From Oculina patagonica (lineage: Eukaryota), in the NCBI RefSeq assembly GCF_052425735.1, contig NC_135766.1:11594001-11658000 (forward strand): a DNA stretch of 64,000 nt, written 5' to 3'. The position numbers and the translations under genes are program-made. The notes under the pieces were generated by a model. It was not told the DNA's origin. It saw only the letters and a program-made list of their open reading frames with translations, and ran no database searches. The first letter of the stretch is position 1. Every line of letters begins with the position of its first letter. Shown one piece after another: positions 1 through 63,639 of the stretch.

Positions 1-426
1 GCCTTCAAAGAGCATCTCTTCCAGCGGGTTAGAAGCAACAAAAACACTCTTGCAATGGTGACGTTCCTTGAACAATTGTGCAATTTTTCCAAGCCTCTCA
101 CCTACACCAACTACAATGTCAGTCGTAAGGTCTTGTGGTGGGAAGATCAACCAATCAACAGGGTCATCAAAACCTGGCTGTTCCTTTGCTTCAACAATGG
201 TAATACCATAACTGGCAGCTTCTCTCTTGTCCTTTTCACTACACGAATCTTCTTCTGGAACAAACAAAGTGACTCTCATCCAAGGGATTTTTGCCAATTT
301 AATGGCAAAGTCAATGGCAAAAGTTGATTGGGATGACGAGTAGGGAACAGCAACGTGCAGTGGACCGCTGGAGGAAAAACTTCCACTTTTGTCTACTGTA
401 CATTTTGAGCTGTTATCAGAGCAACA
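1..426 (-). CDS. GT4 glycosyltransferase-like exon (second GT domain of gene D), truncated by window edge
   Basis: Phase-0 acceptor ttgctattgcag|TGT at 426. Open frame to the edge reading CCSDNSSKCTVDKSGSF...AIKLAKIPWMRVTLFVPEEDSCSEKDKREAASYGITIVEAKEQPGFDDPVDWLIFPPQDLTTDIVVGVGERLGKIAQLFKERHHCKSVFVAS. Near-duplicate of the exon at 5056-6196. Not in the ORF track. Confidence 0.85.
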
Positions 427-830
427 CTGCAATAGCAAAGCAGAATGTTTTAGAGCAAAACCGACTGTGCATTAATACTTTTTGTATATGTACCATGAGT
501 GGTACTATTTTACTATATAAACTGCTTAACTAATAGATTCCATTTTGCAAACAAATTATACAAGTTACAAATTATTTGAGATATCTCTTTCTTCATATTT
601 TAACCAAATATGGTCGAGTAGATGATGTCATCATTTTGCTTATTTGCATATTTTATAAACTTGAATATCTCTGGAAAGAAACGAGATATTTGAAAACAGT
701 AAACAGAGTTTTTTCTTCTCACACAGACTTCTTGCTCATGTTTTAAAACGCTTTATACAATAACCGAGCTAGTATTGCGTCTGTTGTGATTGGGTGATGC
801 CTGTCATCTATTAGAGTACAGACGCACAGA

Positions 831-1222
831 TTCAGTTGCACAAAGCAATCCGTCACTTACATGCCAATTGATATTTGGAAAGACCTTCCATCTTCTTTGA
901 AAGACTTAAGTGTGTTAGCATTTCCCAAGCAAATAAAACGTTACCTCCTGTCAGAACAAAAACTAAACTGATTCTCCACTAAACTAAGTCTGTAAATTCG
1001 TAAGTCCTCTTCCCTATTGTTACTTATTAATCACCTGCTTTTTATACTATTGATAACAGTAATTGTACGGGGAGCTAACTTAAAAACCTACCGGTTCATT
1101 TAGCTCCCCAGCTCAATACTAAATTAACTACAAATTCCTGTAATACCTTATTTCTATTTAATTAAGAATACGAACACAATGTTCTGTAAACTTTAATATG
1201 AGCGAAATAAAATTATTATTAT
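831..1222 (+). mobile_element. 3' remnant of a CR1/L2-type LINE
   Basis: Translates as ...SCTKQSVTYMPIDIWKDLPSSLKDLSVLAFPKQIKRYLLSEQ, resembling the C-terminus of CR1/L2 ORF2. Ends in aaataaaattattattatt. Confidence 0.55.
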
Positions 1223-2065
1223 TCAAGAAATCATTGAAATCTGTATGAAAGTGTTTGACTGATGTTGTACAGTTGGAAGACGCTGCGGGAAACAAATGAA
1301 TGGGGGTTGAACACTTTGGTTAATGCTTACAGATTTGAGCAACTTTTCAAACCGGAATAAAGGTTAGTTTTTTCATAACTGACTTTCAATATACCATTTT
1401 TCTGCTTATTTAATCGGTTTAATAACAGAGCTTCGTGGTTACGGAAACTTTATATATCATGAAGTCACTTTTGAAAATGTACGTTGCTAAGCAAATGAAA
1501 CGTCAAGTTTAGTAAAATGCATTATTTTGTCATGTTTATAACTGCTGTTTGTTTTATATTTTAATTTTTTTATTAAAAAAACTGCTTCAAAAATTGCTGC
1601 TTCAAAATAATCTGTCCTCCTCAACAAAAAAATACACAATTATAGCGGAGCTCCTAAGCGTAGCACCATAACCATGAAAGAAGGAACACTATCGAAATGA
1701 GTTTTCATGGTCAACATGGATAGCGGCATGGTTCGCGGGCGCGTACGTACGGCGTACATACCTAGTACGGAGTCGCGCAACATGGCGGCCATAGTTTGAT
1801 GGTAGAAAGAGTGAAGCAAGAAGGCCGTATAAAGGCGGCCTTTGAAATTTAAAGAGGTTTGAAAAGAAAAACAAGAAGCAATGAAACAAAATGTGGCTGA
1901 AAATTACGTGTAGAAAGTAATCGACCGCCAAAAAAGTGGACATTGAGAGCCATAATCGATCGATGACTTTCGTGTCTATCTGTAAAGCCAGCATCGTACA
2001 TGAAGGAGCATTCGAAAGCTAAATCGGGTTGATATAATAAACAAACCATTTTATTGCTACGGGGT

Positions 2066-2155
2066 ATAAAAAAAAAAAAACTTGACCCTCTGGGATTTGA
2101 ACTCACGACCTCCCGAGCCGCAGACTGGCACCTTACCGATTGAGCTAATCCGACA
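2066..2155 (-). repeat. tRNA-derived segment (Pol III A/B boxes + oligo-T), not a functional tRNA
   Basis: Minus strand GTCGGATTAGCTCAATCGGTAAGG...GAGGTCGTGAGTTCAAATCCCAGAGGGTCAAG(T)n. A and B boxes are present but the acceptor stem does not pair. Confidence 0.65.
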
Positions 2156-2416
2156 GACTCTGTAATGCACGTTGAATATATCCTATATCAATGTAATAAA
2201 TATTGTGGAGTCTACTAAACTGCTGCGAAACTATAACAGGATCGCGAAACTATTTTCTATTGCTAGAAAGCAGATAATTTACTGTACTCTAAAGTAATTT
2301 TTCGTGCCATGAGTAATGATTTTGCCCCGCTTTAAGATTGTTATTTTTGTCGTACTGCTGACATTCAGTTTAACCGTGAGCTATTTAAATTTGTCTTGCA
2401 CCTGGGCATTTCCACA

Positions 2417-3875: not shown

Positions 3876-4129
3876 CTTTTCTATGTCCTCTTGTTTCTTC
3901 TCTTCTAGATCTGTTAACTGGCAGTCCTTAGATGTGACTTGGTCAACTGTCTCCATTCCTTCACTTTGCTCCTCACTGGGGCCAGAAGGGACCTTTTCGA
4001 ATCTTGTTTTCCCTGTACAGTCCTGGCCAAGTGAACTAATGGTGTGAACTGGCACACAGTTTTCACTCTCCACGGACTTTTGAAAAGTCACTCCGGTACT
4101 CTTGCCCTGGTCTTGGCTCTCTGGTGATA
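3876..4129 (-). CDS. Disordered charged linker exon of gene D (phase 1 to 0)
   Basis: Acceptor ttattag|TA TCA CCA at 4129; donor AAG|gtaagag at 3876. 254 nt, SPESQDQGKST...LEEKKQEDIEK. Phases fit both flanking GT exons. Confidence 0.75.
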
Positions 4130-5055
4130 CTAATAAATCATAGAAACACAAACAGTAAGCTAGTGTTACCACCATTTGCATTGAAACCCGACTTCAGAAG
4201 TCAAAAGGTTTCCAAGATTTCCATCAATCAAAGGTTGAAGGGGGTTTCCGACAACATTTGGCACAAGCGATCACGAAAGTGAACTGGTGATAAATAAATT
4301 TCATTGCAGCCAAAACTCCAATAAACTGCTTTTTAACAGATTTGTAGCTAAGTTGCCAAAAAGGGCTTTGTCTCCCTAAACCGTTGGAATTAACACTAAA
4401 AACATAAAAGATACAAAATTTTTATGTTCATCGAGCTGCACTGTGGTGCGACATTTAGTCTGGCACTGTCACCTTCCGTCGTATAAAAATATTTTTTTCA
4501 TAAAATCTGTAAGCCGTTTAGTTCCATTCAGTTTACAAATGCAAAAGATTTAAAATGAAGGTAAAGTCTTTTTAAAGCCCTGAAAACTTTAGTGGTGATC
4601 ACAGCATTTCACAAAAGTTGCATGGAGGCTAACTGACCAGAAGCTAATCATCTTGGGAACTAAACTACAAAACTAATATCCAATTGAATATTAGTCATTA
4701 CATCACAAATTATCAAGAGCTCATTTAACTGTTACACTCCAACACTGTAAGGTGTAATGCTGACTGAACTGCATCTTTTTTTTTCGGTTTCTTTTTATGT
4801 CATGCACACAGTTCAACATGCCCTATGCGCCACTGGGCATTTAAAGGATTGATGACACAGTTCAACAAACAGCACAACTTCCAATATTATGCTGAAATGC
4901 CTTGCTACAGTGTTAAATTGTACAGAAAATTTTAAAATACTTTGCTTTGACAGCCCAATGATCACAGTGCAACTTTTCACTTGATTATGCGATTGACATT
5001 TCTGATTGAAATTCTTAGAGAAAATAATACAAAATAAAAGAAGTTACGTTCATAC

Positions 5056-6196
5056 CAGAAACAATGCTAGACATCTTATTAGCCAAATCTCCACACTGTT
5101 CCTCCCAACTGAACTTCTCATTATAATGCGCGCGCTGTGTTGCAGCCTGCTCAAGCCTTTCCTTCCTTTCTGTTTCTCGCACTTTCTTGATTGCCTTGGC
5201 CCACACCTTGGCATCCTCAGAATCCACAGTGGATGATGTACCAGACTCAACCTCTCTGAGGGCTTCACCGAATCCTGAATCCCCATGTACCAGGATGGGC
5301 AGACCAGCAGATAATGCTGCAAGAGCTATCATTTCAAATCCCTGTTCACCTGAAGGCATGATGGCAAGGTCTACCTCACAGAGCAATCTTTTCAAATCTT
5401 CTTCACATTTTGGAGGGCTTCGAATAGTAAGCTGACTTTCAGAAATGCCATGATTTTTGGAAAACTGCTTCTGGTTTACTTCTGCTGCATTAACATAGAA
5501 AAGATGATAAGATCTGTCATCCAACTCTGCAACTGCTTTTGCAGCAATGTCAAGTCCCCCTCGGTTGCTACTATCTAAGACCAACACACGAAACTTTCCA
5601 CCACCATTTGTAGCGTGGTTCTCATTCAAAATTTCACAAAATTTACTAAGTAAGCCTGGGGTAAGGTTGAAAACTTTTTTCATGTCAAAACAGAGAGAAG
5701 CAGACAGTTTCTCTGTCATCTTTGGCCCAATGGCAATAGGCAGATCAGCCGCTTGACAGAGTCCAACATTTCTCTGATGCCTCAATTCTCTATCCTTTAG
5801 GGTGGTATTTTTATCAATTGTACCTTGGAATGTAAGGTCCTGATCATCAGGGTCTAAAGCTACATAAATGCTCTTACAATGGAGACTCTCCTTCAAATGT
5901 TCTGCAATTTTTCCAAGTCTCTCACCTACACCAACTACAATGTCAGTAGCAAGGTCTTGTGGTGGGAAGTTCAACCAATCAACAGGGTCATCAAAACCTG
6001 GCTGTTTCTTTGCTTCAACAATGGTAACACCATGTCTGGCAGCTTCTCTCTTGTCCCTTTCACTACATGAATCTTCTTCTGGAACAAACAAAGTGACTCT
6101 CATCCCAGGGATTTTTGCCAATTGAATAGCCAATGTATTCAGTACAGTCAGGCAACGCCAGCGTGGTGCCAGGATGATAACTTTCAATGGGTAAAC
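5056..6196 (-). CDS. GT4 glycosyltransferase-like exon of gene D, catalytically degenerate
   Basis: Acceptor ttgcag|GTT at 6196; donor G|gtatga at 5056. GT-B/GT4 signature region DLAIMPSGEQGFEMIALAALSAGLPILV lacks both Glu of E-x7-E. Confidence 0.88.
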
Positions 6197-7254
6197 CTGC
6201 AACAGAGGAGCATTAGCTGACTCAGCATTAATGAGTACGGTATTCACATACTGTAAGTGACATGTTGCTGACATTGGCTGCAGCTGCACTTAGAGAGTTG
6301 ACTGGGTTAATTTTCTAGAAACCCGGGTTAAAAAATTCCACAAAACTTAACTCGGTTAAAGTATCACTAACTCGGTTAAATTTTTTTAGCGGCCGCATTA
6401 AGATCAGACCAGACTGAAGTGATGTCATGATTAAGCTATTTGAAAACAAGCGAAAACGGCCGGCTTTCATGATAATTCTATTACTTTCTCAATTCTTCTC
6501 CTGCTTTTTTTATTTATTTCAATGCATTTTCGACTTACACCGTTCTTTCCCTTCCTAATGGGTTCTATGCAAATATTCAAGCCCAGTTGTTTCGAATAGG
6601 TTTTTTTTCACAGTCGTTGTAAGGCTCATCGCTCGTCTCCATATTGAAATCGCCCTTAAGTGTGCATTTTCCAAAGAATCTGCGAAGAGCTCGAAGAGAT
6701 CATCAGAAACTATGATAGCCCTGTTGGAGCCAAATAATCATTGCTCAGGTGGTTCTAGAGTTTCCTAGTAGCAAGGGAAATTATAGAATTAAGCCGCTAA
6801 TTGTGTCCGAATGCCATGTTTGCGTGCACGTGTGATGGAAAAGAACATCTTTATGGTGACGATTGACACATTTGACAAATAAAGCAATAGTTGAATCTGA
6901 TAAAAGAACACTAACCTCAGGTTAAAACTACCCAGAAAGGTGGTTTAGAATTAACCTAACCCAGTTAAAAAAATCTATTGTTGATTAATTTCCATGGGAG
7001 CCGCTTACTGGGTTAAGAGTCGGTTAACTTTCCAAATAAGCGGCCTTATTAGACATTTTTTCAAACCCATTTAATTTTAATTGATTAATTGGAAATAACC
7101 CGGCCATTTTATATTTAAAATAAATAAGCTGAGTGAGTTTTTCGTTAGAAACTGGATTTAAAACACTATCAAGTAGCATCTATAACACTTTTACAAATAA
7201 AATTAAATCTTGATTGCACTAAATACACACATGTATGTACATGTACATGTATAC

Positions 7255-7295
7255 CTTTTTGTCGCCCTTCTTAAGAAGAGAAGGAGGACTGGAAT
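7255..7295 (-). CDS. Candidate 41-nt linker micro-exon (phase 1 to 0) upstream of gene D GT exon
   Basis: taag|AT TCC AGT CCT CCT TCT CTT CTT AAG AAG GGC GAC AAA AAG|gtatac = (D)SSPPSLLKKGDKK. The acceptor is weak. Confidence 0.3.
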
Positions 7296-11595: not shown

Positions 11596-12173
11596 CAAGC
11601 CCACAAATCAATGACTGACCCTGGTCTCCCTTGCGCTGTTAGGTCATTGACTAAGCTACCCAGCACAGGCTCCTGTGACGGAGCCCCCCCTCAATTTTTA
11701 TGCGTGCGGCTGGCTTGAAGGCCGACTGTCATCGGCCTTCAAGCAGGGCTCGCGGAGTCCAAAATTTGTCCAATCAGTGTGTAGAATTTCAAGCCCACAA
11801 TTCAATGACTGAACCTGGTCTCCCTTGGGCTGTTAGGTCATTGACTAAGCTACCCAGCACAGGCTCCTGTGACGGAGCCCCCCCTCAATTTTTATGCGTG
11901 CGGCTGGCTTGAAGGCCGACTGTCATCGGCCTTCAAGCAGGGCTCGCGGAGTCCAAAATTTGTCCAATCAGTGTAGAATTTCAAGCCCACAATTCAATGA
12001 CTGAACCTGGTCTCCCTTGGGCTGTTAGGTCATTGACTAAGCTAACCAGCACAGGCTCCGGTGACGGAGCCCCCCCTCAATTTTTATGCGTGCGGCTGGC
12101 TTGAAGGCCGACTGTCGTCGGCCTTCAAGCAGGGCTCGCGGAGTCCAAAATTTGTCCAATCAGTGTAGAATTT
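11596..12173. repeat. Three-copy ~193-bp tandem repeat with multiple internal hairpins
   Basis: Units start at 11596, 11790 and 11982. Each has GCTTGAAGGCCGA-n6-TCGGCCTTCAAGC, GGCTCC-n6-GGAGCC and TCAATGAC...GTCATTGA stems. Confidence 0.9.
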
Positions 12174-12325
12174 CATGGTGTAGCAAGCTGTGACTGACAA
12201 AAGATGGCTGCTTAGATAACCAAAGTAGTCACTTGGATAGTTAGCTAGTCCTAACCGGATTTCTTCCCTCTCCTGCTAAATAGCAGATTAAAGAAATTTC
12301 CACTCAGGAAAAGCAGAATATAACT

Positions 12326-12490: not shown

Positions 12491-13262
12491 AAACCATGCC
12501 GAATTCTGACCCTATTTTGATAAATTCAGACATATATATGACTACAGTTACGACTCCAATTTAGATTTTCACTACGTAACAAGCGCTTTGCAATTTGGCA
12601 TAAAGATCAGGATGCCCAAACACGAAGGGCATGTAGCAGACAGAAAAACACAGAATGTAGACACGCAAGAAAATATAGCGGAGACATGCTACAGCGACAC
12701 GTCCCCTGAAACGTGTTCCCGCCACATTTTCTGAGTGTGCACATACCGTGATCTTGTCACTGCTAAACGTACCTTCGTGTCAGGACCTGAAGTGGGCGAA
12801 TATTGTGTTATTAGTTTGATGGATCAAGTGGCTGGTTCAGACAGTATAAGCATAAGCTCATTCCGTATTAAATATCCTCTTTCTATACAAATATACAGGA
12901 AGTAACTTACTAACAAAACGAGCTAGGCCCATTCAAACGAGGGTAAAGAACTGAAAAAAAATGCGAAATATTTTGTATTTTCATTATTTTCTGACTTTAA
13001 TCTATTCGAGTTTCCAAGAATGAATATCTTGTCTTTGCGCTTCCTGTGGTTACCTAGAAAATAGTTAAAAGAACGTTTTTCTCTTTTTCATTTAAGTAAA
13101 GCGTATTAGCTACAGAAAGTAAACGTAAAACTTCTCAAAATACTATCTGATCCAATGGATTTAGAGACATACTGCTGCTGTTGCTTAGAGTACTTTTAAC
13201 AACAGCTACTTAAGGGAATATACCAAACATTTTTTCTAAGATTATAAAAATTTCGTTTTCCA

Positions 13263-13297
13263 CTATATTACAAAACGTTGCTCTTTGGACGCTGCAT
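13263..13297 (-). CDS. Last exon of gene C (alternative coding end DAASKEQRFVI*, or 3' UTR exon after the TM exon)
   Basis: Acceptor ttttattttacag|AT GCA GCG TCC AAA GAG CAA CGT. Paralogous exons begin at 40558 and 58104. Confidence 0.55.
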
Positions 13298-13509
13298 CTG
13301 TAAAATAAAATAAAGACATAAATAAATAATAATGAAAGGTACACGAACAAGTAAATATGAAGGAACTCGCCATAGGCAAGAAGAAGGAAAGAAATAAAAA
13401 AATGTTTAGTCTTCCCGACGCAAGTGGAATTCGACCTGTCTTTGCAGGGTTGAGGGCAGTCACTTTGATAATGATCTTTTCGTCAAGGCTGATTTGGATG
13501 GGTGTTTTA

Positions 13510-13815
13510 ATGGAGGGGGAGGAGGAGCTAGGGGAGGAGAGGACGAGGAGGGGCAGAAGAGNNNNNNNNNNNNNNNNNNNNNNNNNNNNNNNNNNNNNNN
13601 NNNNNNNNNNNNNNNNNNNNNNNNNNNNNNNNNNNNNNNNNNNNNNNNNNNNNNNNNNNNNNNNNNNNNNNNNNNNNNNNNNNNNNNNNNNNNNNNNNNN
13701 NNNNNNGAGGGGGGAGGGGGGGGGGGGGGAAGGGGGGGAGGAGAAGGAGGCAGAGGAGAAGGAGGAGCAGGAGAACCAGGACAAGGAGCAGGAGGACGAC
13801 GCCACCGACGAGACG
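13510..13815 (+). repeat. GA-rich purine low-complexity tract containing the assembly gap (N 13562-13706)
   Basis: GGAGGA-type repeats flank 145 N. A paralogous tract lies at ~40820-41125. Confidence 0.9.
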
Positions 13816-14584
13816 AAGGCATGGTAAACAAAGATAATTTAGTTCTTTACACTTTAATTTAGTTCTTACCACGTAGTGAATAATTAGTCAATGAAGAGCG
13901 ATTCAGCTGTGCAACTAAGAAATAGTTGGAATGGTAGTTTAAAACTTCATAAACTACTCCACCATAAGTTGCACAATACAAGCAACGTTGCTCAAAAACA
14001 ACACGCTAGTTAAAAAATTAACAAATTGAAACTACTCTTGAACGGTACGTTCCAGGAGATTTTTTAATGATCATGGTTGTGATTTTGTATATCCAGCTCT
14101 CCTCTTTTTCACCTACGGTCTCACCAATAGAACAGTTACCTACAAAGAGTTGTCAGTATAACAACCCAAATCATTTCTACATCAGGAAAGTAGCAGGTCA
14201 ATTTCGCATTTTTTTGTTGAAATGATGTCTCCTGTTTTATAAGTCAAATGAGTAAATAAGTCATGAGTCAGTAAGTCAAGCTAATTTTTGCACAAAGTAG
14301 GTTATCTATTATTCAAACGATGGTTTGCCTGTATATAAAATTACAAGCAGTCAACTTTGATTTCGGTTAGTTCCACGCCAATTTGCTTGCAGTTAGGTCC
14401 ACTTCAGTTTGCTTGCAGTTAGTTCCAATCTAGTTTGCTTGCGTTTAAATTTTACATCTTTTAGTAAGGGCAGCACCATTTTCAAATGAATAACTAAATA
14501 AAAAATGTGACTCATGACGCACTGACTTACAAAAACTTTAATCTCTGTTGAAATAACTATGATTAAGGAAAAAATAACTCACCC

Positions 14585-14697
14585 TCAGAGCACAGCATAA
14601 GCAATAACTGCTAGAATGCCTATCAACACTGCTACGATTATCAAAACATTCCAATTGGTCCTTAAATCCTCTTGCACACTTGGCTGCGAAGTTTCAG
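14585..14697 (-). CDS. C-terminal transmembrane (tail-anchor) exon of gene C
   Basis: Strong acceptor tttcttttctctag|CT GAA. Reads (A)ETSQPSVQEDLRTNWNVLIIVAVLIGILAVIAYAVL*. Donor gg|gtgagt lies 2 nt after the stop. Confidence 0.7.
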
Positions 14698-17600
14698 CTA
14701 GAGAAAAGAAAAGCAAGAAAATTCAGCTAAATGACAACATCAGGACAGAAAAGACGGTTTACGGAGAAGCTAACCGAAGCTAAGTCCTTTACTTTAATTT
14801 TGTTTATTATAAAAACAAATTATCTGGGAAGAGTAAGAGAAAATCGTAGTGATTGACACAGGAATGTTAGAACAGACAAAACGCTCTGTGGGTAACTATT
14901 TTCTAACACTTTGAAACCTTGATTGTCTTTACCAAAGTCAACAGACTGACCTGAGACAGCGAAATAACAAGCTGCACATTTCAGAGACAAGGGAAAACAC
15001 AAGCATGCATCCATTAAGTGGTCACCACCGACTGTGGGTTACATTTTAGCACCCGCCATTTAAAGAATTTCAAAAGGAAGTCAGGCCACACTATTTTAAT
15101 TAGTTAACTGATATTAAGATACAAAACGGACACAGTAATGAGTATAGTGAAACCAAAAATGGGGTTTAAAAGAAAGTAAAACTTAAAGCCTATTTGTAAG
15201 TTACTTTAAAAATAAAAATATAAACCCGAAAGTAATTTCCAAGCTATTTAAAAATAGTTTTTGGTCTCAAAGACTCAAAACAAAACAAACCAAAACACAA
15301 CCTATCGAGTCTACTTGGCGAACCTGGGAACAGATTCACAAAGCTGCTCTGCAAGTTAAAAGATGCATCCTACATGTTGAGAAAGATGTAATTTTTCTGT
15401 TGTCACGAGCGTGGGGCAAAGAAAAAACCTGAATCTCCAACGGGAATCGAACCCATGGCCTTTCGAATGATGACCTTTCATGACTGATCGGACGCTCTAA
15501 AATAAGGAAGATTCGTTGCGAGCAGACTTTTCCTTCTACTAGGCTCATGGGACATGCGTCCTGTATACTGCTAGGACCGGTAATATCGAAAGCGTACTGT
15601 GTGGAGATTGACAAAGAAAGATGGTAATTTTAAGCTACGTAAATAAAATGAGAAAAGTGTAATTTTCTTTCATGAGCGTGGGACAAGAAAAATATTGGAA
15701 TCCCTAAATTTTGTATCTTAACAATAGGCTTTGATATCTAAATGATAAATTTGAACCTACGAAGACATTCTAACAGTCCCTGGTTTAATATATTCATGAA
15801 GCATTTTTTTTTATGGTTATCATAGCTCGACAGGTAAAAGGCAGCCCGTGTAATAACTGACCGGTTAATTTTTAGCGGAAAATAAAATTCTTTTATTTTC
15901 TCTGCAAAAGTCGAACATTATGTTCTAAATACGAAAATCGCGTATGGTTTGTATTAATAGTTGCATTTGGCTGTTTGGTAGAAGCAACCGTAGGGTGAGC
16001 TAATCCGTTGTTTTTAAAACTGGTTTTGGCCTGAAACTCTCGGCCGTAGATTTACACAGCAAGCTCATGCTAACAAGAAATTAATAAGCACTAAATCAAC
16101 TTGTTCATATCCTACAAAAATCCTCCTATCGATGCCACGCGAGTCATTTACCAGGTGCCTCTCTAATGCGAATTCACAAAAGGCCAAAATGACTGTTAAG
16201 AAAAACAGATTAGCTTATCCTATGGTCACTTCGAAAGAAACGGCGAAACGCAAGTATTAATACTTGCAAGCCAAGACAAACAAATACAAATTCTGTATTT
16301 AGAACATAATGTTTGACTTCTGCAAAAGAAAACGAACGCAAAAACTTAATTTTTATTTTCCGCCGAAAATTGAAAAGTTATACTGAGACAAGCAGCCTGG
16401 ATTGCTTTATAAAATGATCCCAGAAACTAAGATTTACTTATTAGCTCATACCTTGAACGATGTTCCGCATCTTTTCTACAAGCTTTGTACACTGTGTCTC
16501 CCAGCTGTACTTCTGACCATAGGATTCACGTAACGTTTCGATTTCTAGCAGACGTTCTCCATGTCTCGCACGGACAGTCTTGATGGCCTTTGCCCAGTCC
16601 TTGGGCTCCTTTGAATCAACTATAGATGAATTGTCAAATTGTAGGTTCTGTAATGCTCTAGCAAAGCCTGAATTACCACTCACAAGAATTGGCAGACCAG
16701 CAGATAAGGCTTCAAGAACAATCAGACCAAAACCTTCAGTCCTCGATGGCATAATAGCTAGATCAACTTCACAAAACAAGTCTTTCATTTTCTCTCTGTT
16801 TTCTACAAATTTTCTCACCGTCAGTTGTTCTTCAGCAATACCACAGTTGAGTAACGTTTCTGCTACCTCGTCTTCTTTTCCATCAGGGGCACCCACAAAT
16901 AGGAGGCGATAAGGCTCTCCTTTCAGTTCCTGGTCAGCAAATGCTTTAGCAGCGATGTCATAACCTTTCAGCTTGAAATCCTCAGCATCACCCCGACCAC
17001 ACAACAACACTTTGAACTCGGAATTCTCGTTAGCATTTCGCTTCAAACCTGTGAATTCTCTGAAGAGTCCTGGAGTGAGGGTAAAAATGTCTTGATCTCC
17101 CTTACATCTTAAGTATGAAGAGTAAGCCTCTGCCAGTTTGGGGCCAATTGGTACGACAAGATCAGCCAGTTTGCAGAGATCAACTTCAGTCTGATGTTTT
17201 TTCCCACCCTTTGAAATAGCACCAGAATGACTCTTGAACATGCCAAGCTGTTCCGGAGCAGTATGCACCACTTGAACCCATTTACAATTGTAAGATCGAG
17301 GATCTTTTAAAACTTGCCCTTGACAACCAAGCTTCATACCATGGCCAATAACAACATCCATTCTGAGGTCTTGTGACGGAAAGCTCAACCAATCAAGACG
17401 GTCGTACCCTGGGCGTTCCTTTGCCTCAATGACAGTAATGCCGTTCCTCTGAGCTGCGTTCTTGTGCACATCCGTACAGGCACCCTCAGGGACAAAGAAA
17501 GTGACATCTACTCTAGGTTGCTTTGCCAAGTGAATAGCCAGCTCTCTGTTTAACGTTGACAAACCACCAGCCGACGAGGACCACTCATCACCGAGAAGAG

Positions 17601-20600
17601 TAACTTTCAAGGCCGCCGCGGTACAAAGAGGACCTTGTTGCTCAGGTACCACCTGCGACGTAGCCTTTGCACCAACGTCAGGATGAAACTGCAACAGAAT
17701 ACAAGTTGAACAAGGTTACTTAATAATAGTTGAATGACAGAAGATCTATTTCAAGAAATCCAGTTCTGCAGCAACATATTCTGAGTAAAAAGGCACTGTT
17801 CTATGCGCCTGGATTTATGTCCTGCCAGAGAGGTGTCTAAGATTCAACCTGAAGAACATTCTATACTGATGATGTACATGTAGCTCTTCAGAGCTCCGTG
17901 TAACATGTATAATTGCTTGATTACGAAATATCAAAGTTGAGTAAAAGCAAACGAGCAACAACATGTAACTTTATAAAGTGACCTCATTTAAGACGCTTTA
18001 TAGTTTGATGTAATTAACGTTTCTTTGGGAAAATCCAAATCCGGATTCTTGTATCCAAAAAAGGATTTTGTGTTTCTTTACCTATATAATCTGAAAATGG
18101 ATTAATCTTGGATCAATGATCTCAAGAATCCACACTTCGAGTGGATACATCAGATCATATCTAAATCCGGACTTTTTGGATTCATGACCCGTGGGTTTCT
18201 TTTGAAAAGGATTTGAAAAAAGTGCATTGGCCCAGCGGTCTTTGCTGTGAAAGTACAGTTTCGCTCTGTGTAAACACTGTCATACGGTAAGTCTTCAGGC
18301 GCTTATTTCGATCAAAATACAAGAATAATTCACGAGACAGGATGCAGGTTTTCGAGAACAGCCACCTTGTACCTATGGAAGTTGTATCCTTTTGAAATTG
18401 CCACGAGTGAAGTTTGCATTGTTCCTTTTGCAAACATTCTTCGCTCTCAGATGCATTCTCGCCACATTGTGCTTGAGGCTAAAGATGATATTTTCTGTTT
18501 TGTGCGAAATGTGTTTACGGGGTTGTCATGCGAAAAATCCATTTTCGGATTCTTCGTTTCTTTGGGAGCAAAGTATCCATGTGATTTGAGATCAATGATC
18601 CAATTTTGGATTTTCCCAAAGAAACGCACCCTAAGTCACGGTATCACTTTTGGTGTAAAGAAAAGTTCATATCTGTTTAGGTTTTTCAACAAGAACCAAC
18701 ATAGCATTAGAGATTTAGTTGTTTCGAAAATATGATTAACACAATGTCGGTTTCTGATTGTCCGAGCAGCGGTTAACACTAGCCCTGGAATAAACACTTA
18801 ACAAGAGTTTTACTCTGCCTGTTTAAGAATCAGTTTTTTTGAGCTAATTTAAGTCTTAAGTCGCATCACGCTCAATATTTTCACTTGTAACCTCCAGTAA
18901 CTGCCAAAGTCAATGAATAAAACGTGAATTCCATAATTCTAGCTGACATTATAAATAATTAAAGGATTTTTACCTCAGTTCCACGGAGTAGCAACCATTG
19001 CTCTAATCCAACTGGGGCGATTGGTTCATCGCCGAAATTAATTGGACAGATCATCTGTCCTTTGGGACGTAATGGAAGGAGACGCAGGCAGTCATCATGA
19101 GTGCAGCATACTGATCTGTGCTTGTCACACGGGTCAGTGCAGTTCAAGCAGTGAGCGCACGCCACACACAGTTCATACTTGAGATTACGTAGCCAGGATA
19201 ATTCATGTGACATGACTTTTAAGGTATCTTCAAGAAAGGCCCGAACGTCACTTGCCATTGTCGCTGTGGTTGGAGGAGCTGAAGCAGGTTTTCGTTTCAA
19301 AATGACCTTAATGAACCTCTTTCTGCAAATAAGGATCAGATAAAAAATGGTCTGCTTTCCAATGAAGAGCCTCGCTCCATTTTGGTACAAGTTAGGAGCT
19401 GTTTTGGGATTGTACTCAGAGCACCACCGTATGCATCTTGCCAGAAGCTGAGCAAAGAGCCCGTGAGGTACAAAGCCATCAAGGAACTCTAGATACAGTG
19501 GGCAAGGATCACAGTCAGAGGGCTCTATCTGATACAGCTCTGAAGGAGATGATCTAAGCTGGGCTGGTACAAAGTATCTTTCTTCCTGTTCGCCATCTGC
19601 TGGAAGGAAGGAAAGTTTGGCAATTAAACCATAGAGCTCCATCATGTTCAAAATGTCCTCCTTGGAAAGGCCTTTCTGAACAAGATCTGCAAAAACATGA
19701 TCGACAAGAGCCATTCTGAGAATGCCACTTTCCTCGAGCTCCTGCCAGCACTCTGAGTACAGAGAATTCTAAATGAAAAAAGAATAATGTGAATTGTTAG
19801 AAAGTAATGCTCTTTTCAGTAACAAAGAAATAAAAACTCCAAACAAAACCTAAAAACGTGATAGGTTTAGTTTTCCTCCTGACTGACTGATCCCCTCCCT
19901 ACCTAGTTTGTTGCAAGACTTTTTGTTTTTGAACTAATAGACAATTTGCACGATGACATGATTTTGCTGTACAACAACCGGAATCCTTCAGGTAGTCCTT
20001 TCATTCCGATCTACTGGTATATGAACGTTGGACACCTAACAGGTTGGTTGTCACAACTCCCAATTGACCCCAAAACAAATTTATTACATGTACATGGAGT
20101 ATCGTTATTAATATTTACCACTTCGTCGTAAGGTCGAACGGTAATCAGTAGTTTGAAAAGATCGATTAGCCACTGAGCCTGTAAAACCACAGTACGGCCA
20201 AACTTCACAATCACACCTAGGTCATGATAGAAATCCAACATGGTTGACAATTCTTCCTCGTCATCAATACGGCAAACTCGTTTGGTGACTGTTAGAAGCT
20301 GATCGAGGTCCATGTGATAGATTTTTGTTGCCACCAGTTCTTCAACAACTTTTTCGAAGTTGAACCACCTAAGAAAGACAACAGGTCATAAGAAGCTGGT
20401 TTGTGAAGTGTTAGCTGTTACTGTTGCGGTGATATGATTTCTAAAGATTGCTGTTAGTTGTTATCGTCATCGCTAACTACTGTAGATATGACAGAATAAA
20501 TTAAATTATCATTCTTTTTATTGGCCAAGAGGCTACCACATGACCTGCAAATAACAGCAACAAACAATGGTCTGCTCATACGTATTACCGTCTGACAGTG

Positions 20601-23600
20601 ATTTCTGCAAATATTATTCTGCTCCTGCGTAGTTTTGTTCAATTATATGGAAAATGGCAGCTAGTTTTCCAGAGTTGTGGAAGAGTGGTTGGATCTGTCT
20701 ACAAGTCCCGCAAGGCAAAAAATTTCCCCCTAATGTATTTAGGTGATATCTGAAGTATGTCTGTATTCAGGTAATATATATCTGAAATTAACAATAACTG
20801 AACTCGGTTTTTGCAAAGTAACAAGATCATTTATTTGCCGAAGCCGAAATAATTGATAGACCTGCAAGATACTGACAAATCACGATATTTTGCTCAACCT
20901 CGTCGAATAATTGTTAATTATTTGCATGGCGGAGAGAAACAAGCATTGACACGATCCTCGGAATGGGTCCACCAATATAAACATTTGGGGAAAAGAAACC
21001 CGAATAATATTCAGGACTTCAATGGGAAGTCCTAAATTTTCTCAGGCTTCTTTACGCCTATTGCTTAAATTGATGGGCTCACGGTTAGAACGGTGGCAAT
21101 GCTTGTTTAGAGTACATGTAAACACAAGATTTCATATTTGCTTAAGGAAACTTTCAAGGGTTGTATTCACTTAATTGAAGAAACGTTGACCATGTGAAAA
21201 GTATAAAACATTAAAGATATGACCCAATGGCATTCTGGGTAGACTTGGTAAGCTTGGTAATATTCCTTTTATTAATAGTAAAGATGTTTTATTTCTTTGA
21301 GAGCCTTTTCCAACCTGTCTTATTATTACGTTTATTCTGTCACAGGCGACAATTATATTTTTTTCCGATTTCCCGGTAAACATTTAGATCGCATCGTTCA
21401 TGATTTATGCTTTTTATGGGTCAGCGGTTCTTCAATCTGGTGCACCTCACTACTGAAACGTTCATGCGCAAAATGAACATTTGGCACGTCAAATGTCGTC
21501 ATCATCAGGCCCTACTTGACAACTGTATTGGTTATTACAGGCACCATACCTGATCGGCACCTCTTCACCCATGTATGGTTCCTGGTTCAACACCTCCATG
21601 ATCTTATTCTGCAGTGATTGAACCCCATAACCACTCAATGATCCTGTGTTATCAACAGCAAAGAATGGCCTGATAACATGCTTCTCATATGCCTTTCCTT
21701 TAATACTCTTCTTGATGCACCTTTCCATTTCCACGATGTCCTCAAATGGTTTATCGGCATGCGTACCTACAATAAAGACTGGAGGACGGAGGCAGCGTGG
21801 ATTTCCCTTCCGATCATCTGCTTCATCTCTTGTGGGTCGAATACAGTGCACTGAGACCAACCAGGACAATAAATTGTCCAAATTTGTCTGATTGGTTGGG
21901 TTTTCCAGGAGGATATCAAGAGTCCCCTGCCTTGCACAAGGCTCTGCTTGGGTGCTCAGATCTTTGCTAAGGTTATGCACCAAAACGTAAACAGCTCGCA
22001 AGGAAAGGAATATGGAATGTGATGCGTAATAAAGGTGTTGCCCAGCAAAATCCCACACAGATAACATGACTTCTTTGGCTTTGATGTCATCCTCTAATTT
22101 CAGACCCTGTAAGTACTGCTCAACCATTTCCATGACATCATTTGGCAAAACTGCAGTTGTATCAATTCTTGATTGAGTATCTTGATCTGCTGGCATGCTC
22201 CTTTGTGGCACATTACTGCTGGGAGGGTCAATCTCTGTTTTGCTTACCTGGTTTGAATCTGGTATTGAGTCACCCATCGTAGGAGAAGCTTCTGATTGCT
22301 TGAGACGTTCATCGTCAGCCTGGAACGGAAGAAAAACACCTGAGCACAATTAATGTTTCATGGAAATAAAACCAATTGACCTAATGAAAAACCTATAACA
22401 GATTTTCGGTATCTATTGTAAACTGGATTAGATTAGGCACAGTAACACACAAGTTTGGTAGAAAGTTCATAAAGTGCAACGGATAGCACGCGGTAAGGGC
22501 GCGCAGAAAGATGGTACAAATGAAGAGAGTACAGTTAAATCATCAAAACAAAGCAGTCAGTTATACCTCAATACCAGGCAAAATGAGAGCATGTGAGCTT
22601 AGAAATTTATTAATTACCTGCTCCAAATCCATCTTGTCAATAGTCTTTGGGTCTTTGCCTTCCAATTCTTGTAAGTCTCTGGCAATTATTTTTGCTAGGT
22701 CGTCATTAAACTCAGACACATCAAGTTTCTTCTGTTCTGTGCACTGCCAGTTCTGAACTTGGTCGACCCCCACTTCACACTTGGATGGGTCAACTTTGAC
22801 TCCTAGAGTACTCTCTTCTTTAGGGTCAAAAGGGATGCCAAGCAGAGATTTCTTCAGGCTTGTCTTCCCTGCACGGCCTTGGCCAAGTAACATAATACGA
22901 CCGCGGTAAACTTTCACACTTCCCTTTTTCAGAGCTTTTTGATAAGCAGCCTCTGCTTTATGGCCCTGGGCTTGAATTTCATGTGGTACTGAGGAACCTG
23001 GGTTGAAATGAATGACATTTAATGCCTAACTTCACTTAGTAGAACAGCACTGTTTGGGGATGTTGCAGTAAAAGTCTCGCCGACAAACTTCAGAAGCTGC
23101 AAAACCGTGCGGCTCACATATTGTTATCCGCTCCTTGTGATTCTAATACTGCAGACCTGCCTCGAAAGGCCCCTGCTAAACAATTGTGGCATTAGACAAT
23201 TATTGAATTAATCGAATAAATGAATTATTTATTCTCAGGCTAGCTAGAAATGCAGCGATGTTCTTTAATTTATGTTAAATTAAGGTTATTTAAGCGTATA
23301 CACGAAGTGCAACGACTGACATCGACAACTTAACGAGCAAGTATTTGCATAAAAATATACATGAGCGCGCGCGCGTGATTTGATGTATTTGCGTGTGGAA
23401 TTGTTTGTGAACAAAATGTTTACTCAAAGTGAAGTAGGGCTCTAAAAATACCCGTGTTTCTTTGATTTCTAAAACAACGAAAAATGTTAGAGCTCTTAAG
23501 AGATTTTACCCAATTTACAGCAACGCTTAACATAATACGTTTGTATAGATTGAAGGAAGTCTGTGGCCTAATATTCATACAAATTTGAATATTCTTGCAA

Positions 23601-58740: not shown

Positions 58741-61241
58741 CATCCTCGTCGTCGTCACTAGATTGCTGTTCAGCTAACCAAAGAAATTGAAATTCAGCTA
58801 AAAATCTTTAATAAAACTCCACCAATACAAAACTAAACAGAAAAGAAGAATCTTTTATTTTACATGTTGAATTGACAAAAACTAGCCATGGTATATTGCA
58901 ACTATTGAGTTTTGATTGGATTACAGGTCATGGTATATGAGCTCATATATCATTGACCACAAATATGTTAGGTGTACGCGTCAGCGAGAACAGCTGGGGA
59001 GCTCAAATATTGCAATTCTTTTGTTGTTTTTAATAAAAAAAATAATTCTACTGCACGCTACCATCTCATTACCAACACGCACACTCGTGGAATAGTTGTT
59101 TAATTTAAAATACCTGCTGATTCGAATGCAAGAAGGAATCGTAAGGAGCCCATTAGTGATCCACTTTGCTTGGCTTCCTAAACAGATGAAGGAAGAAAGA
59201 TACATCAAAAACAACAATGGTCACAAAGTGTTCAGGGCTAAGGTGGCATTAACTTCGCTTGTTGCTAGGGCAGTTATTCACGTATCTGTCTCGCCACGGT
59301 TATAGTACAGTAATGGCCTTCACTGGTTACCAGGCCTAAAATGTCAAGAGGCTAATGACCTTTTAAAGGATCAGATTTGATCACCACGATTTTAAAACCT
59401 ACTTAGGACCTTAGGATATTGCCAGCAATAATTCTGCGATTGGCTGTTCTTCAGTCATCATATCATTAAGACTTGTATATATTTGAATTAGAAAAAAAGC
59501 GTGGAGTAGTCTTCTGTTTTAGTAGACACTCCTAAGGAATACAGTCCAAAACCTGTCAATATCAGTAAATAGAAAACAGTGGGAATCGCGTCAATCAGAT
59601 TTGCGGATTTCCAAAAGAATGCCAAAAAAAAACGTTGCTTACCTTTAACAAGTTCCCGTACTTCTGTGCCTTCTTCTCGTCCTTGAATGACGAAGAGTAG
59701 TTTTGAAGCAAAGTGAGAATGTCGATTCTGTCGTGTCGCGTCATCTCTTCCTTGTTCTTTTTCCACAGCTTTTCATAAAATTTAAATGCCTCGGCTTCGT
59801 ACTTTTTGACCAGATCCTTCTCACGGAGTATTTTACACAATCTTAACAGATCTTGCAAAATATCTTCTCTCTGTTGGCGCGGTAGCTTTTTGGTGTCTGG
59901 GGAATTCCATGCCCCTTCATAGAACCAAAGAGCTTCTCGTTGGTACTTTTTCTCCGTCTGCCTGTCACCAAAGTCACTGAGCCGTTCGTTTATTGATTCA
60001 ATGATTTTCTTGTTGGCCAATGAAAATTCAAATCCTTCGAATTCTCTTTCTTCATCCCAGTAACGTAGATAAAACTCAAACCATTCCTTCTGAAATTTTG
60101 TCCTTCTCAAGCCTCTAAGCATCCCCTCGTAGGTTTGAACGAGTCGGACCATAATTTCGCTGTGATTTCCTTGTCCCAAGGATTTTTCAATCTCCCAGGC
60201 TTCTGCGTAGTACTCTTCCGCTTCATCAAAGTCCTCTAAAGTTCGACAAAGTTCCGCCATTTGAAAGGCACTCCGAGCAGTCAACGGATGGTTTCCTAGA
60301 ATGTCTTTCCTAATCTCGTACGCGTCCTTTGCAGGCTGGTAAGCTTCTTCGAACTCTCTCAGCCACGCGTACGAGTTTGCAATGTTTCTGTCATACAGCG
60401 CTGTGTTTAGCATTCCTGGGATTTTGAGCTCCTTGGCGAGTTCTAGGGCCTCTTTATAGCATTCAATTGCCTTGTGGAATTCCCTCTTCCCTTCATAAAC
60501 TGTACCGATCTGAACTTTGAAAAATGGCATGTCAAAGTGATTCATAGAACCAGAGAGTTTCTTCCTCATTTCGTAAGCTTTCGTGTAGTACTTTATCGCT
60601 TCATCATGTTTGCCTGACTTGTTGTGACAGTTCCCAATGGCGTTCAAGCATCTGGAGGTGCTTGTGTGGCTCTGCAGGGTCTTCCATTATCTTCAGTGAC
60701 CGATGCAAGATCCTTAGTGATTTTGCCATTTTTCCTGCTCTGTAGTAAACTTCACCCTGAACATAGAGGTAAGAGCTTTGAATAAGCCTGAAGAATTCGC
60801 TGTCTTTGGCTTCTTTTTGTATTGTCTTCAGTGACTCATCTGCCCCCTTTAGCACTTCCAAAGCTTTCTGCCATCCCTCAAGTTGAAGGACCTGTAAAGC
60901 TTCTCGGCTCTTCAATTCCGCTCGAAGTAAGGATCCTAGTTAAACATAAAACACAATAAAATCACGAAATAGCATTTTCATAGACAAACACCACAAAAAA
61001 TGGCTTATTCATTTTGTAGGAAACAAAACTAGGATGTTTATTTCTGAAAAGCCTGCGAATTCGGACAGTAATTTAAAATCCTCTCAAACGTACTTAAAGA
61101 TGTCATTTTGTCCCAGCACAAATGGGTGTAAACTGTAGCTGCCTTACACACCTCGATTTGGTTTAAGTCATTTCATTAAAATAAATGCTAAAACTAATCT
61201 CATAGTTGTCTCAGGCAAAATGCAAGTGCTGTTTTTCTTAT

Positions 61242-61293
<52 letters not shown>

Positions 61294-61440
61294 GTCAGTC
61301 AGTCAGTCAATCAGTCAGTCAGTCAATCATTCAGTCAATCAGTCAGTCACTAAAATCAATCAATGGCTCAATCCATACACCCATTCATCAATCTTCCCAT
61401 CGATCGATCGATCAAACGATAAATCAAAAATCGATCAAAC
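61242..61440. repeat. (TCAA)n/(TCAG)n microsatellite
   Basis: Direct reading. Confidence 0.9.
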
Positions 61441-63639
61441 ACACAAACACAAACACAAACACATCAACTAACAAATGAAAAAAAAAACATGATTCTGTCC
61501 AGCATCTCTATCTCTCTTTACGGAAAAAAAAGACACGCATATATAAGGGTCCAACAGACAGGACTGACAGGAGTAAGATGAAAAGGCAAACATGGAACTC
61601 ATTGACTCTTTTCTTGGCAAGAGTCTGATGTACCATTTTATGCTTCTCATTTTTGGATTTTTTGGGACGCATGAATTAATAATCTACAAACAAAACAAAA
61701 TCATCCAATCAGTAAATAAATCAGCAACATTTTTCTTAGTTGATCTTTAACTGGAAATTCATTAATGTTAATATAAAACGTTTGCTTCGACGAAGGGTAA
61801 CGCTCGAAACATCAGCTTTTCAAAATTCACTGCTGCAGTTTACTAATTTTCGACAATTTACAATCAACTACAATCAAGTGTTTCTCTCCCTGAAATATCC
61901 TTCAGTTTGGACATGAAAAGGTTACAAAACCTTTATCTTGCCTTCTGGTAAACTTTCATGAAAACGGTGCTGTTACCGATGCTCCTTAAAAACTTTCGCA
62001 TCAACGGATGAATGTCGTAGGAGAGGACCTTCGCCTCTGGGTCAACCGATACTACTTTGCAATTTCGCAAGCCCTCCAGCTGTATAACAGCTTCCGACAA
62101 GTCCACCCCGAGGATGGTAGCGGCTGCTTCGGCAGAGAAAGGACGGCCAAATAATGACACTGAAACGGCACTCTCTTTTAACCTTTTACTCGGCAGGAAG
62201 AAAAACATTTTTCTCAAGCAGTTCTCTTGTTCTTTGTCAATTCCTTCCTTTTTGTAATCGAATAGTTCTCTCTCCTGTGTAACTTTCTCTGTCGGTGTTA
62301 ATCTCGTTTCTGGGATTCCGATCACCACCTCTTGCTCTATGGTTTCAAGAAGCTTTTTGTCATCTGTTGTCTTCTGCCTTAAGATGGCGGCCATTCCGTT
62401 TAGGATAAGGGGATTCCCTTGGCACATTTGTATCAATTTCTCCCTTTGTTCGTCTCCAAGACCAAGATTTCCATGGGTTTGAAGCAATATACCTGCGACA
62501 GTCTTATCTAACGCCTTAACCTCATAATTTTCGACATCTAGAGAATCACCGTGACGAATCGTAGTTCTCGAAGTCAACAAAATCTTCAACTTTGATTTTC
62601 CCTGAACGCGCTGAAGTCTTCGGAGAAACGTCGCAAAGTTGATATTGTGGTCCTTGGCAGCGTCTGCTTCTCCTCCCGCAAACTGATCAACATTATCCAA
62701 AAGTAACAGGATGTCGCTTTCGTCGTCTTGCATCAGTTGTTGCATTTGACCAATGACTGGATTTGCTTCGTAGCTTACGAACATTTGCTTCGATCCCGTT
62801 AATGCGTTCAGAACGTGGAAGTGAACGCTTTTTATCTCGGTTATTCCTCTAAAGTCGGCTTTCAATTTTCTGCCAGGCCACTTTGATAAAGTTTCAATGG
62901 CTAGCGTAGTCTTGCCAACCCCACTGGATCCATACAAATTCATAACACTCGAACTGCCTGTTAATAGCTTTGTCATAACTCTCTCCAAGTCGTGAACTCT
63001 GCCAGTTAAATCTCCTTTTGTCTTTTCGGCCTCTCCCTGGCGTACAGTTTTGAAGCATTGAATCTTTTCTTGGATGCTCTCCTTCTTGGAGGTTTTTGGA
63101 GTTACAAACCCCTCTAACAAAGTTAGATTGTCCTCCGACACGAGTCCTTGATTGGCAAATATGTGCAGACATGAATACAGATCTCGCTCTTGTTGATCTT
63201 CAAATTTGCCTTTAAAATTTCTTTTAATAGACGAAACGGCAACTTCGAGTTCTTCAGGGCTTAATTCACTTGAAACGTCTTTAAGAAGTTTGTCAAAATC
63301 AGGAGAAATCTCTCCTGTCGCCGAAACTGTTTCGATCGACGCCATCTTTGCCAAATATCAATGCAATAAAGTTATGCAAAGTATAATCAGACATTGTTCA
63401 TAAAATGATGAAAACATTCACGCAACCCTCGACCTACAGAGAGCTGTCCTATTTTCTGCATTTAATCTGTACTACAGCTGGTCACAAAGATAAGAAAATT
63501 TTGCCACCAAAGCCATCATCATCCACTCAATTAATTAACTGGTCATGATAAAGAGCATAACCGCGGCAATAATGTTTTACAAGTGCGAAACACGCAACGC
63601 TCAAAGGCATAACTGATGAAAATATCTACTAATGATAAA

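Follow-up and report, generated by a model that had tools for sequence, protein, structure and literature searches.

Gene structures at the locus

A 64,000-nucleotide stretch of the genome of the coral Oculina patagonica (RefSeq assembly GCF_052425735.1, contig NC_135766.1, positions 11,594,001 to 11,658,000; hereafter the window, whose own positions are used throughout) was found to hold a cluster of genes in which family 4 glycosyltransferase (GT4) exons are joined to switch domains of the STAND and ROCO types. The window consists of AT-rich animal DNA, in which the large open segments of the open reading frame (ORF) listing all lie on the minus strand, as do the gene features given below. 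Five GT4 exons were identified, four of them complete and one partial at the window start, within open segments at 1-444 (the partial copy, recovered by tblastn), 5018-6289, 16444-17715, 25197-26558 and 41842-43191; the count of five GT4 exons in one co-oriented cluster, given in a preliminary description of this DNA, was therefore correct. The four complete exons match the Pfam family PF20706, GT4-conflict ('Family 4 glycosyltransferase in conflict systems'), with 152-288 bits (E 4e-44 to 2e-85) against a curated cut-off of 26 bits. The Pfam scan of large exons also placed NB-ARC domains accompanied by a sub-threshold death effector domain (DED) at 47208-48989 and 61936-63357, TPR arrays at 44811-46283 and 59598-60939, and a Roc domain at 21492-22349. 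Furthermore, a homology search started from a long coral GT4 protein returned two O. patagonica proteins that map onto the window, P0210 and P0153, corresponding to the two genes here termed gene B and gene C. At the protein level, PF20706 is matched twice in P0153 and once in P0210.

Gene B encodes a protein of 1470 aa (P0210, GenBank ACROYT_G030868), which is matched exactly by translation of the window exons at 48929-47246, 46210-44969, 44578-44340 and 43086-41839, with GT-AG introns throughout. From Pfam, Foldseek and the match to P0210, exon 1 (47246-48929) comprises a probable, divergent DED (residues ~15-106) and an NB-ARC/STAND ATPase, the latter scoring 43.3 bits in Pfam against a cut-off of 23.5 and possessing the Walker A and Walker B motifs GSSGVGKTT and LLLLDNVD. 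Exon 2 (44969-46210, phase 1 at both ends) contributes an array of sensor-type repeats, matched by TPR_12 (E 5.5e-32) and by MalT-like TPR. Given that NACHT is matched at only 31 bits, more weakly than NB-ARC, and that there is no LRR match, gene B falls outside the strict definition of an NLR (NACHT plus LRR); it is NLR-like in logic only, with an NB-ARC-TPR rather than a NACHT-LRR constitution. Concordant but weak signals lead us to regard its N-terminus, with moderate confidence, as a divergent DED: the Pfam DED match reaches 20.4 bits, below the cut-off of 35.9 (E 6e-4), the top four matches of a profile search against the PDB are to the DED of c-FLIP, weak at E 0.1, and the top 32 Foldseek matches of an AlphaFold2 (AF2) model (predicted local distance difference test score 67) are all DEDs, with a template modelling (TM) score of 0.79 to the DED of FADD and E values of 0.05 or worse.

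Direct splicing of the TPR exon to the GT4 exon was rejected, since the phase 1 donor and phase 0 acceptor are out of frame and yield an immediate TGA. The two are brought into frame because a conserved, acidic, low-complexity linker exon of 239 nt (exon 3, 44340-44578; RNA joint at its 3' side) runs from phase 1 to phase 0. Exon 4 (41850-43086; 1237 nt, phase 0 to 1) then encodes the GT4 domain GT_B, which scores 288 bits against PF20706 and retains its motif residues. An in-frame fusion of GT4 to DED-STAND-TPR, as the preliminary description had proposed, is thus borne out by the exact match to a deposited model and by RNA joints, with the proviso that the linker exon is needed to preserve the frame.

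Transcript evidence for gene B came from contigs of four RNA-type runs (X1-X4) placed on 40451-46450. The joint between linker and GT4 exons (44340 to 43086) is present in X1, X2 and X3, and in X1, X3 and X4 loose ends at 46211, the TPR acceptor, continue precisely with the 3'-terminal sequence of the NB-ARC exon. A further joint in X1 and X2 links the GT4 exon to a fifth exon (41850 to 41511) through a conserved G/GTATG donor (the slash marking the splice boundary). By this joint and by alignment to gene C, exon 5 (41261-41511) is a decayed homologue of the tail-anchor exon described below; it contributes TATHVQH before a stop codon, such that the protein ends in ...HGTATHVQH, and the deposited ACROYT_G030868 model, which misses exon 5 and reads through to HGMR and a stop, is slightly wrong at its end. 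With the stop codon upstream of an exon junction at 41261, the mRNA could also be sensitive to nonsense-mediated decay. Intron 3 (43087-44339), just 5' of the GT4 exon, is covered at a depth of 11-29 in X1-X3, against 0 for the other introns; as general DNA carry-over would cover every intron, this indicates specific retention of intron 3. The retained form would terminate at ...KVKINE, and would not include the GT4 domain. Contigs covering intron 3 diverge from the reference at ~3.7% of positions, suggesting that the intron sequence is polymorphic. A loose end of X1 at 44983 matches the TPR exon of gene B and then continues into a 13-nt segment absent from gene B and present in both the pseudogene paralog E (see below) and P0266, a paralog with ZU5 (LOC144665649) that is 91% identical and is encoded elsewhere on the chromosome; the loose end probably derives from P0266, and was counted neither for nor against gene B.

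Gene C encodes a protein of 1573 aa (P0153, RefSeq LOC144665651), matched exactly by translation of seven window exons (26384-25208, 22997-22618, 22319-21550, 20368-20119, 19768-18974, 17688-16452 and 14697-14585) with GT-AG introns. Exon 1 (25208-26384) encodes an N-terminal GT4 domain, GT_C1, which scores 226 bits against PF20706 and has lost the motif Arg, Lys and both glutamates of the EX7E motif. Exons 2-3 (21550-22997) encode a Roc GTPase with a long disordered insert, scoring 54 bits in Pfam against a cut-off of 27, with the P-loop GQGRAGKTS, G3 DFAGQ and G4 THAD. The COR domain of exons 4-5 (18974-20368) scores 35.0 bits against COR-A, just below the cut-off of 35.3 (E 1.5e-8), compared with 40.6 for its paralog P0213. 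Among Foldseek matches to an AF2 model of Roc-COR built from 18 coral sequences, the top 35 comprise only structures of LRRK2, LRRK1 and prokaryotic Roco proteins (lowest E 4e-11), and the matches include the isolated COR domain 3dpt (TMt 0.60). Exon 6 (16452-17688; 1237 nt, phase 0 to 1) encodes the C-terminal GT4 domain, GT_C2 (281 bits against PF20706; motif set intact), whose sampled words recur in two RNA-type runs at fractions of 0.54-0.55. Most coral relatives of P0153 have LRRs, whereas none were found in P0153 itself by Pfam. Since the window exons reproduce P0153 exactly and the splice phases fit, the second fusion of the preliminary description, in which GT4 is joined in frame to Roc-COR, also stands.

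Exon 7 of gene C (14585-14697), assigned by the P0153 match and hydropathy, supplies a tail of 37 residues ending in a 22-residue hydrophobic segment (mean Kyte-Doolittle hydropathy 3.18 over 19 residues), and the protein C-terminus reads ...WNVLIIVAVLIGILAVIAYAVL before the stop codon. This hydrophobic segment lies at the extreme C-terminus, and the N-terminus (MSDTALRV...) is not signal-like; gene C therefore has the sequence features of a tail-anchored protein, with membrane insertion predicted. At the opposite end of the gene, the frame of GT_C1 extends without a stop through the 58 codons preceding the annotated ATG (26385-26558), where a polypyrimidine tract is followed by CAG (TLLFQ/D). 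This looks like a relic acceptor, or one still in use, from a time when the GT_C1 exon may have been internal. Downstream of the gene, an assembly gap (13562-13706) lies in non-coding sequence between the gene C stop and a conserved 3' segment, ~880 nt downstream of the stop codon (14585-14587) and inside a low-complexity tract. No coding frame crosses it, and ORFs listed across it were rejected as artefacts of translating N.

A candidate third gene, gene D, lies near the window start. Its GT4 exon, GT_A (5056-6274), scores 152 bits against PF20706 and has lost the catalytic motifs. A candidate linker exon (3876-4129; phase 1 to 0, identified in silico only) lies between GT_A and the next GT4 copy, GT_0 (1-426), which is the 5' part of a degenerate exon running past the window start and is 75% identical to GT_A. 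The GT4-GT4 fusion put forward for gene D in the preliminary description is accordingly phase-compatible through 4129-3876, as an in silico construct only. The candidate exon contains the sequence GQDCTGKT and is weakly similar by blastp (E ~1e-3) to the region of the Roc P-loop exon in P0153 and in other coral ROCO proteins, which hints that gene D may have arisen from a ROCO gene by in-frame loss of the Roc-core and COR exons. Between the 3' region of gene C and GT_A we also observed three tandem copies of a ~194 bp unit (11596-12175; 96-98% identity).

GT4 domains, paralog E and the shared 3' ends

The state of the active site differs markedly among the five GT4 copies. The full set of GG loop, His, Arg, Lys and the two EX7E glutamates (G, G, H, R, K, E, E) is present in GT_B and GT_C2. 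In GT_C1 the Arg, Lys, Glu and Glu positions are occupied by S, Q, G and A, respectively, and in GT_A and GT_0 essentially all of these residues are lost. All seven motif positions are invariant in 24 of 24 coral GT4 domains that follow Roc-COR, GT_C1 being the sole exception, and GT_C1 is likely, judging from its residues, to be a pseudo-enzyme. Because three of the five copies lack catalytic or donor-binding residues, we restrict the label of glycosyltransferase effector to GT_B and GT_C2; the glycosyltransferase output envisaged in the preliminary description could apply to these two copies only, in which the motif residues are intact, and not to GT_C1, GT_A or GT_0. The ratio of nonsynonymous to synonymous substitution rates (dN/dS) between GT_B and GT_C2 is 0.33 (dS 0.36), which indicates that the GT_B exon has been constrained since duplication. 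For GT_C1 against its relatives the ratio is ~0.2, which constitutes weak evidence given that dS is saturated in these comparisons. Inference of the donor sugar from solved structures was dropped, as these yielded only remote GT-B matches.

A quick maximum likelihood tree of 176 GT4 domains, with support from the Shimodaira-Hasegawa-like approximate likelihood ratio test (SH-aLRT), revealed different ancestries for these copies. GT_B, GT_C2 and the GT4 domain of the ROCO paralog P0213 form one clade (SH-aLRT 99). GT_C1 nests within the main clade of coral GT4 domains located C-terminal of Roc-COR (SH-aLRT 100) and shares 76% identity with an LRR-Roc-COR-GT4 protein of Oculina; GT_A was placed in a third clade. 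As the two GT4 domains of gene C fall in different clades, they are not tandem copies of each other, and GT_C1 appears to be a ROCO effector domain that was relocated and may have lost its active site afterwards.

The neighbouring paralog E (57704-63345) is a pseudogene related to gene B by duplication, in which NB, TPR, linker and 3' segments persist. It possesses four disabling lesions, among them an in-frame TAA in the NB exon (beyond which homology continues), a frameshifted TPR exon and a linker exon interrupted by TAG, in agreement with the decayed paralog noted in the preliminary description. The GT4 and tail-anchor exons are both missing, paralog E being without the 3.4 kb in which they lie in gene B.

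Comparison of 3' regions revealed colinearity between gene C (17.7-12.6 kb) and gene B (43.1-39.7 kb), the GT4 exon being followed in each by the tail-anchor exon, a low-complexity tract and the conserved 3' segment. The low-complexity tracts, downstream of the respective tail exons at 40776-41153 (gene B) and 13266-13838 (gene C, containing the assembly gap), are CT-rich, would code for poly-Pro/Ser, and are homologous to each other. The conserved 3' segments, located at 12631-13332 in gene C, 39713-40818 in gene B and 57704-58349 in paralog E, have in common an acceptor-like site, TTTACAG/ATGCAGCGTCC, and that of gene B is transcribed, with RNA depth at 40451-40650. Use of this acceptor (40565, 13304 and 58111) to provide a coding tail after GT4 was rejected, as RNA joins GT_B to 41511 and the RefSeq model joins GT_C2 to 14697; the segment is more likely a 3' untranslated region or an alternative end.

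The two intact GT4 exons agree in length, at precisely 1237 nt, and in phase (0 to 1). Among 24 members of the family defined by the DED-NB-ARC-TPR part of gene B, GT4 is absent from the 23 others, gene B being the only member to carry it, and ZU5 and/or Death domains are found in 11 of its relatives, including P0266, which lies outside the window. By tblastn, no ZU5/Death exons downstream of gene B, nor additional Roc/COR exons, were found in the window. Together, the deposited-model matches, splice phases and RNA joints support the earlier view of the locus as a shuffling cluster in which STAND-TPR and Roc-COR switches are fused to GT4.

Between the genes we also noted inverted repeated segments at 24441-24898 and 52427-52907 (86% identity) and at 30212-30423 and 34764-34973 (94% identity), together with a 252-codon open segment at 34893-35648 without a Pfam match. 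All are probably remnants of transposons interspersed among the genes.

Proposed mechanism and rival explanations

Proceeding from the structures of the genes, the identity of their domains and the state of their motifs, and from the splice joins and paralogy observed above, we infer ligand gating, an immune role and an enzyme activity acting on a sugar donor and an acceptor. On balance we consider it probable that the cluster represents a lineage-specific expansion in which NTPase switches of the cell-death and innate-immunity type carry a GT4 effector of bacterial derivation. Under this reading, ligand would be sensed in gene B by the TPR array, driving nucleotide exchange and oligomerisation; oligomerisation would cluster the N-terminal DED for adaptor recruitment and activate or concentrate the C-terminal GT4, which would move a sugar from a nucleoside diphosphate (NDP)-sugar to a host or invader molecule. 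In gene C, the tail anchor would fix the protein to an organelle membrane on its cytosolic side, where, by analogy with ROCO proteins, the GTP cycle of Roc-COR would gate the C-terminal GT4. The locus itself would evolve through shuffling of a GT4 exon whose length and phase stay constant: gene B would have gained a cassette of the gene C type, comprising GT4, tail anchor and 3' end, in replacement of the ZU5-Death end of its relatives, the N-terminal GT4 of gene C would derive from the lineage that follows Roc-COR, through relocation and subsequent loss of donor-binding and catalytic residues, and paralog E would have shed the cassette and degenerated. An immune output through ligand-gated glycosylation or NDP-sugar consumption is plausible, and is the same prediction as that made by Kaur, Iyer, Burroughs and Aravind (2021, eLife 10:e70394, PMC8195603).

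A number of observations weigh against this reading. The transcript evidence depends on sequencing runs whose RNA nature is itself a guess, the TPR-to-linker junction of gene B was not observed among the RNA contigs (the repeat at 44482-44566 having been skipped in placement), and the model of gene C rests on a RefSeq prediction and on splice phases. Retention of intron 3 reaches a depth comparable to that of the spliced form in X2 and X3, as a result of which many gene B transcripts would encode a protein without the glycosyltransferase. The tail-anchor exon of gene B is decayed and frame-disrupted, with the stop codon ~225 nt upstream of the next exon junction; the premature stop and the decayed exon are compatible with a young chimera that is possibly not yet optimised, or is decaying. 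Finally, the solved structures nearest to the GT4 domains (glycogen synthase, MshA and WaaG) are remote, matching the C-terminal half only at E ~1e-8.

Several of these features could also be accommodated by regarding gene B as a young and effectively neutral chimera, formed when a GT4/tail-anchor cassette landed at the 3' end of a DED-NB-ARC-TPR-(ZU5-Death) gene, and now transcribed with no selected function and heading for the fate of paralog E. Consistent with such an origin, gene B is alone among 24 family members in carrying GT4, its tail-anchor exon is disrupted and places a premature stop ahead of another exon junction, the intron preceding its GT4 exon is specifically retained, and paralog E, its neighbour, is decayed and has shed the cassette. 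We nevertheless regard this explanation as unlikely, given that all seven motif residues of GT_B are intact, that its dN/dS of 0.33 against GT_C2 was obtained at a dS of 0.36, that the correctly spliced linker-GT4 form is present in three runs, and that the phase-adapting exon arrangement is precise. The loss of donor-binding or catalytic residues in GT_C1, GT_A and GT_0 (three of the five copies), which keep the signature of the fold, invites a different explanation, whereby GT4 folds would serve mainly as sensor, decoy or regulatory modules that bind NDP-sugars, glycans or pathogen factors targeting host glycosyltransferases, with output arising through the DED, oligomerisation or membrane events. 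The dead GT4 of gene C does occupy the usual place of the ROCO LRRs or repeats, in a protein (P0153) without LRRs, and its dN/dS of ~0.2 points the same way, although with dS saturated that ratio carries little weight; by contrast, every donor and catalytic residue is conserved across all 26 GT4 domains located after Roc-COR or TPR, which argues for genuine enzymes at the effector position, and we judge this second explanation rather improbable.

The proteins might, alternatively, be non-immune regulators of housekeeping or developmental glycosylation, for instance in membrane trafficking of the LRRK type, in which case the 'conflict' label would reflect guilt by association. Animal ROCO proteins have trafficking roles, and the tail anchor of gene C suggests a fixed organelle location. 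Such a role appears very unlikely in view of the massive lineage-specific expansion with variable partners, including NACHT, Ank, Death, ZU5, caspase, OTU and TRADD-N (homology search; PMC8195603), the presence of a probable DED and of NB-ARC, and the pseudogenisation and cassette turnover within a 64-kb cluster, which are typical of conflict genes and not of housekeeping ones. To the favoured reading of switch-gated GT4 effectors we add a more speculative extension, advanced tentatively: that a modular 3' effector cassette, comprising the GT4 exon of fixed length and phase, the tail-anchor exon and the 3' end, moves between unrelated switch genes of the ROCO and STAND types, and that with every move displaced or duplicated GT4 copies are turned into dead regulatory or sensor domains. 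The pseudo-GT4 of gene C might then replace the LRR sensor and control the active GT4 on the membrane, and retention of intron 3 in gene B might switch between isoforms with and without the glycosyltransferase.

Comparison with known systems

As fusions of GT4 to switch domains are already catalogued in corals and bacteria, the locus is a well-documented new example and not a new system. What it adds are the exon-level and transcript evidence, the cassette swap behind gene B, the composite origin of gene C and its dead N-terminal GT4, and the tail anchor. It provides two compact and fully specified test cases, one STAND-gated and one ROCO-gated, each with a motif-intact predicted enzyme, together with natural controls in the form of a catalytically dead GT4 (the N-terminal domain of gene C) and a pseudogene without a glycosyltransferase (paralog E) as an internal comparison. 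It also offers an exon-level view of how coral immune-type gene families generate new architectures, in a species that has long been in use for work on coral-Vibrio infection.

More than 500 GT4 paralogs with variable, conflict-type fusions were described in Acropora digitifera by Kaur et al. (2021; PMC8195603), who also reported that coral GT4 domains derive from bacterial conflict GT4s, that GT4 fills the effector slot of bacterial STAND and LRR-AP-GTPase-COR proteins, and who hypothesized that it modifies invader molecules or blocks host-invader interfaces. The source data of that study list 'DED+TPR+GT4' in Acropora and Exaiptasia, 'DED+GT4' in Nematostella, 'GT4+NACHT', 'GT4+sGTP+sGTP' in Acropora, and the bacterial architectures 'STAND+TPR+GT4' and 'LRR+AP-GTPase+COR+GT4'. 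These close fusions, together with 24 annotated coral proteins that we found to carry GT4 immediately after Roc-COR, supply precedents for the architectures at this locus, for which the preliminary description had named none. In our homology search, Roc was present in ~26 of the 120 best long GT4 proteins, mostly with COR, and NACHT in ~36 of the 120, across six coral genera; GT4 directly follows COR in 24 of the 26 Roc-COR-GT4 proteins. A literature search for descriptions of a coral ROCO-glycosyltransferase returned only Kaur et al. (2021), with no coral ROCO-glycosyltransferase protein specifically, and in the literature searched we found no experimental test of an animal GT4 effector.

The genes described here share with the systems of Kaur et al. 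the PF20706 family (226-288 bits for the three best copies), the effector-slot logic and an origin in scleractinian corals. They differ in that O. patagonica was not analysed in that study, to which splice-level and transcript evidence is added here, and in that ZU5/Death forms the C-terminal end of the other members of the DED-NB-ARC-TPR subfamily to which gene B belongs. Gene C differs through its GT4 domains from two clades, one of them dead, its predicted tail anchor and its lack of LRRs, a combination for which a term search of the published tables returned no match. Nearer at hand are the coral LRR-Roc-COR-GT4(-OTU) proteins of Stylophora, Pocillopora, Porites and Oculina (e.g. P0236, annotated as 'probable serine/threonine-protein kinase pats1', and P0214-P0219), whose Roc-COR core is 42-55% identical to that of gene C, and in which GT4 likewise lies ~30 residues beyond COR and has the same invariant motif residues. 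In comparison, gene C is without LRR and OTU, adds the dead GT4 at its N-terminus and the predicted transmembrane anchor at its C-terminus, and carries a C-terminal GT4 that belongs to a different clade from those of the other 23 coral Roc-COR proteins, grouping with P0213 only.

In 2013, Hamada and colleagues reportedly described NACHT proteins with Glycos_transf_1 in Acropora. Gene B has in common with such cnidarian NLR-like proteins the fusion of a glycosyltransferase to a STAND module, and differs in that its NTPase is NB-ARC-like and accompanied by TPRs rather than of the NACHT-LRR kind. Its GT4 domain is also C-terminal, following the sensor repeats, whereas that of most coral GT4-NACHT proteins is N-terminal (127 of 172 sampled database GT4 domains are N-terminal). 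With Apaf-1, other NB-ARC-TPR STAND proteins and cnidarian NLR-like proteins in general, gene B shares a probable N-terminal death fold, a STAND NTPase and C-terminal repeats. Gene C, for its part, shares the Roc-COR tandem, as matched by its structural model, with LRRK1, LRRK2 and the prokaryotic Roco proteins of C. tepidum and M. barkeri, from which it is distinguished by the lack of kinase, LRR, ANK and WD40 domains, by a glycosyltransferase as its putative output, and by its predicted tail anchor.

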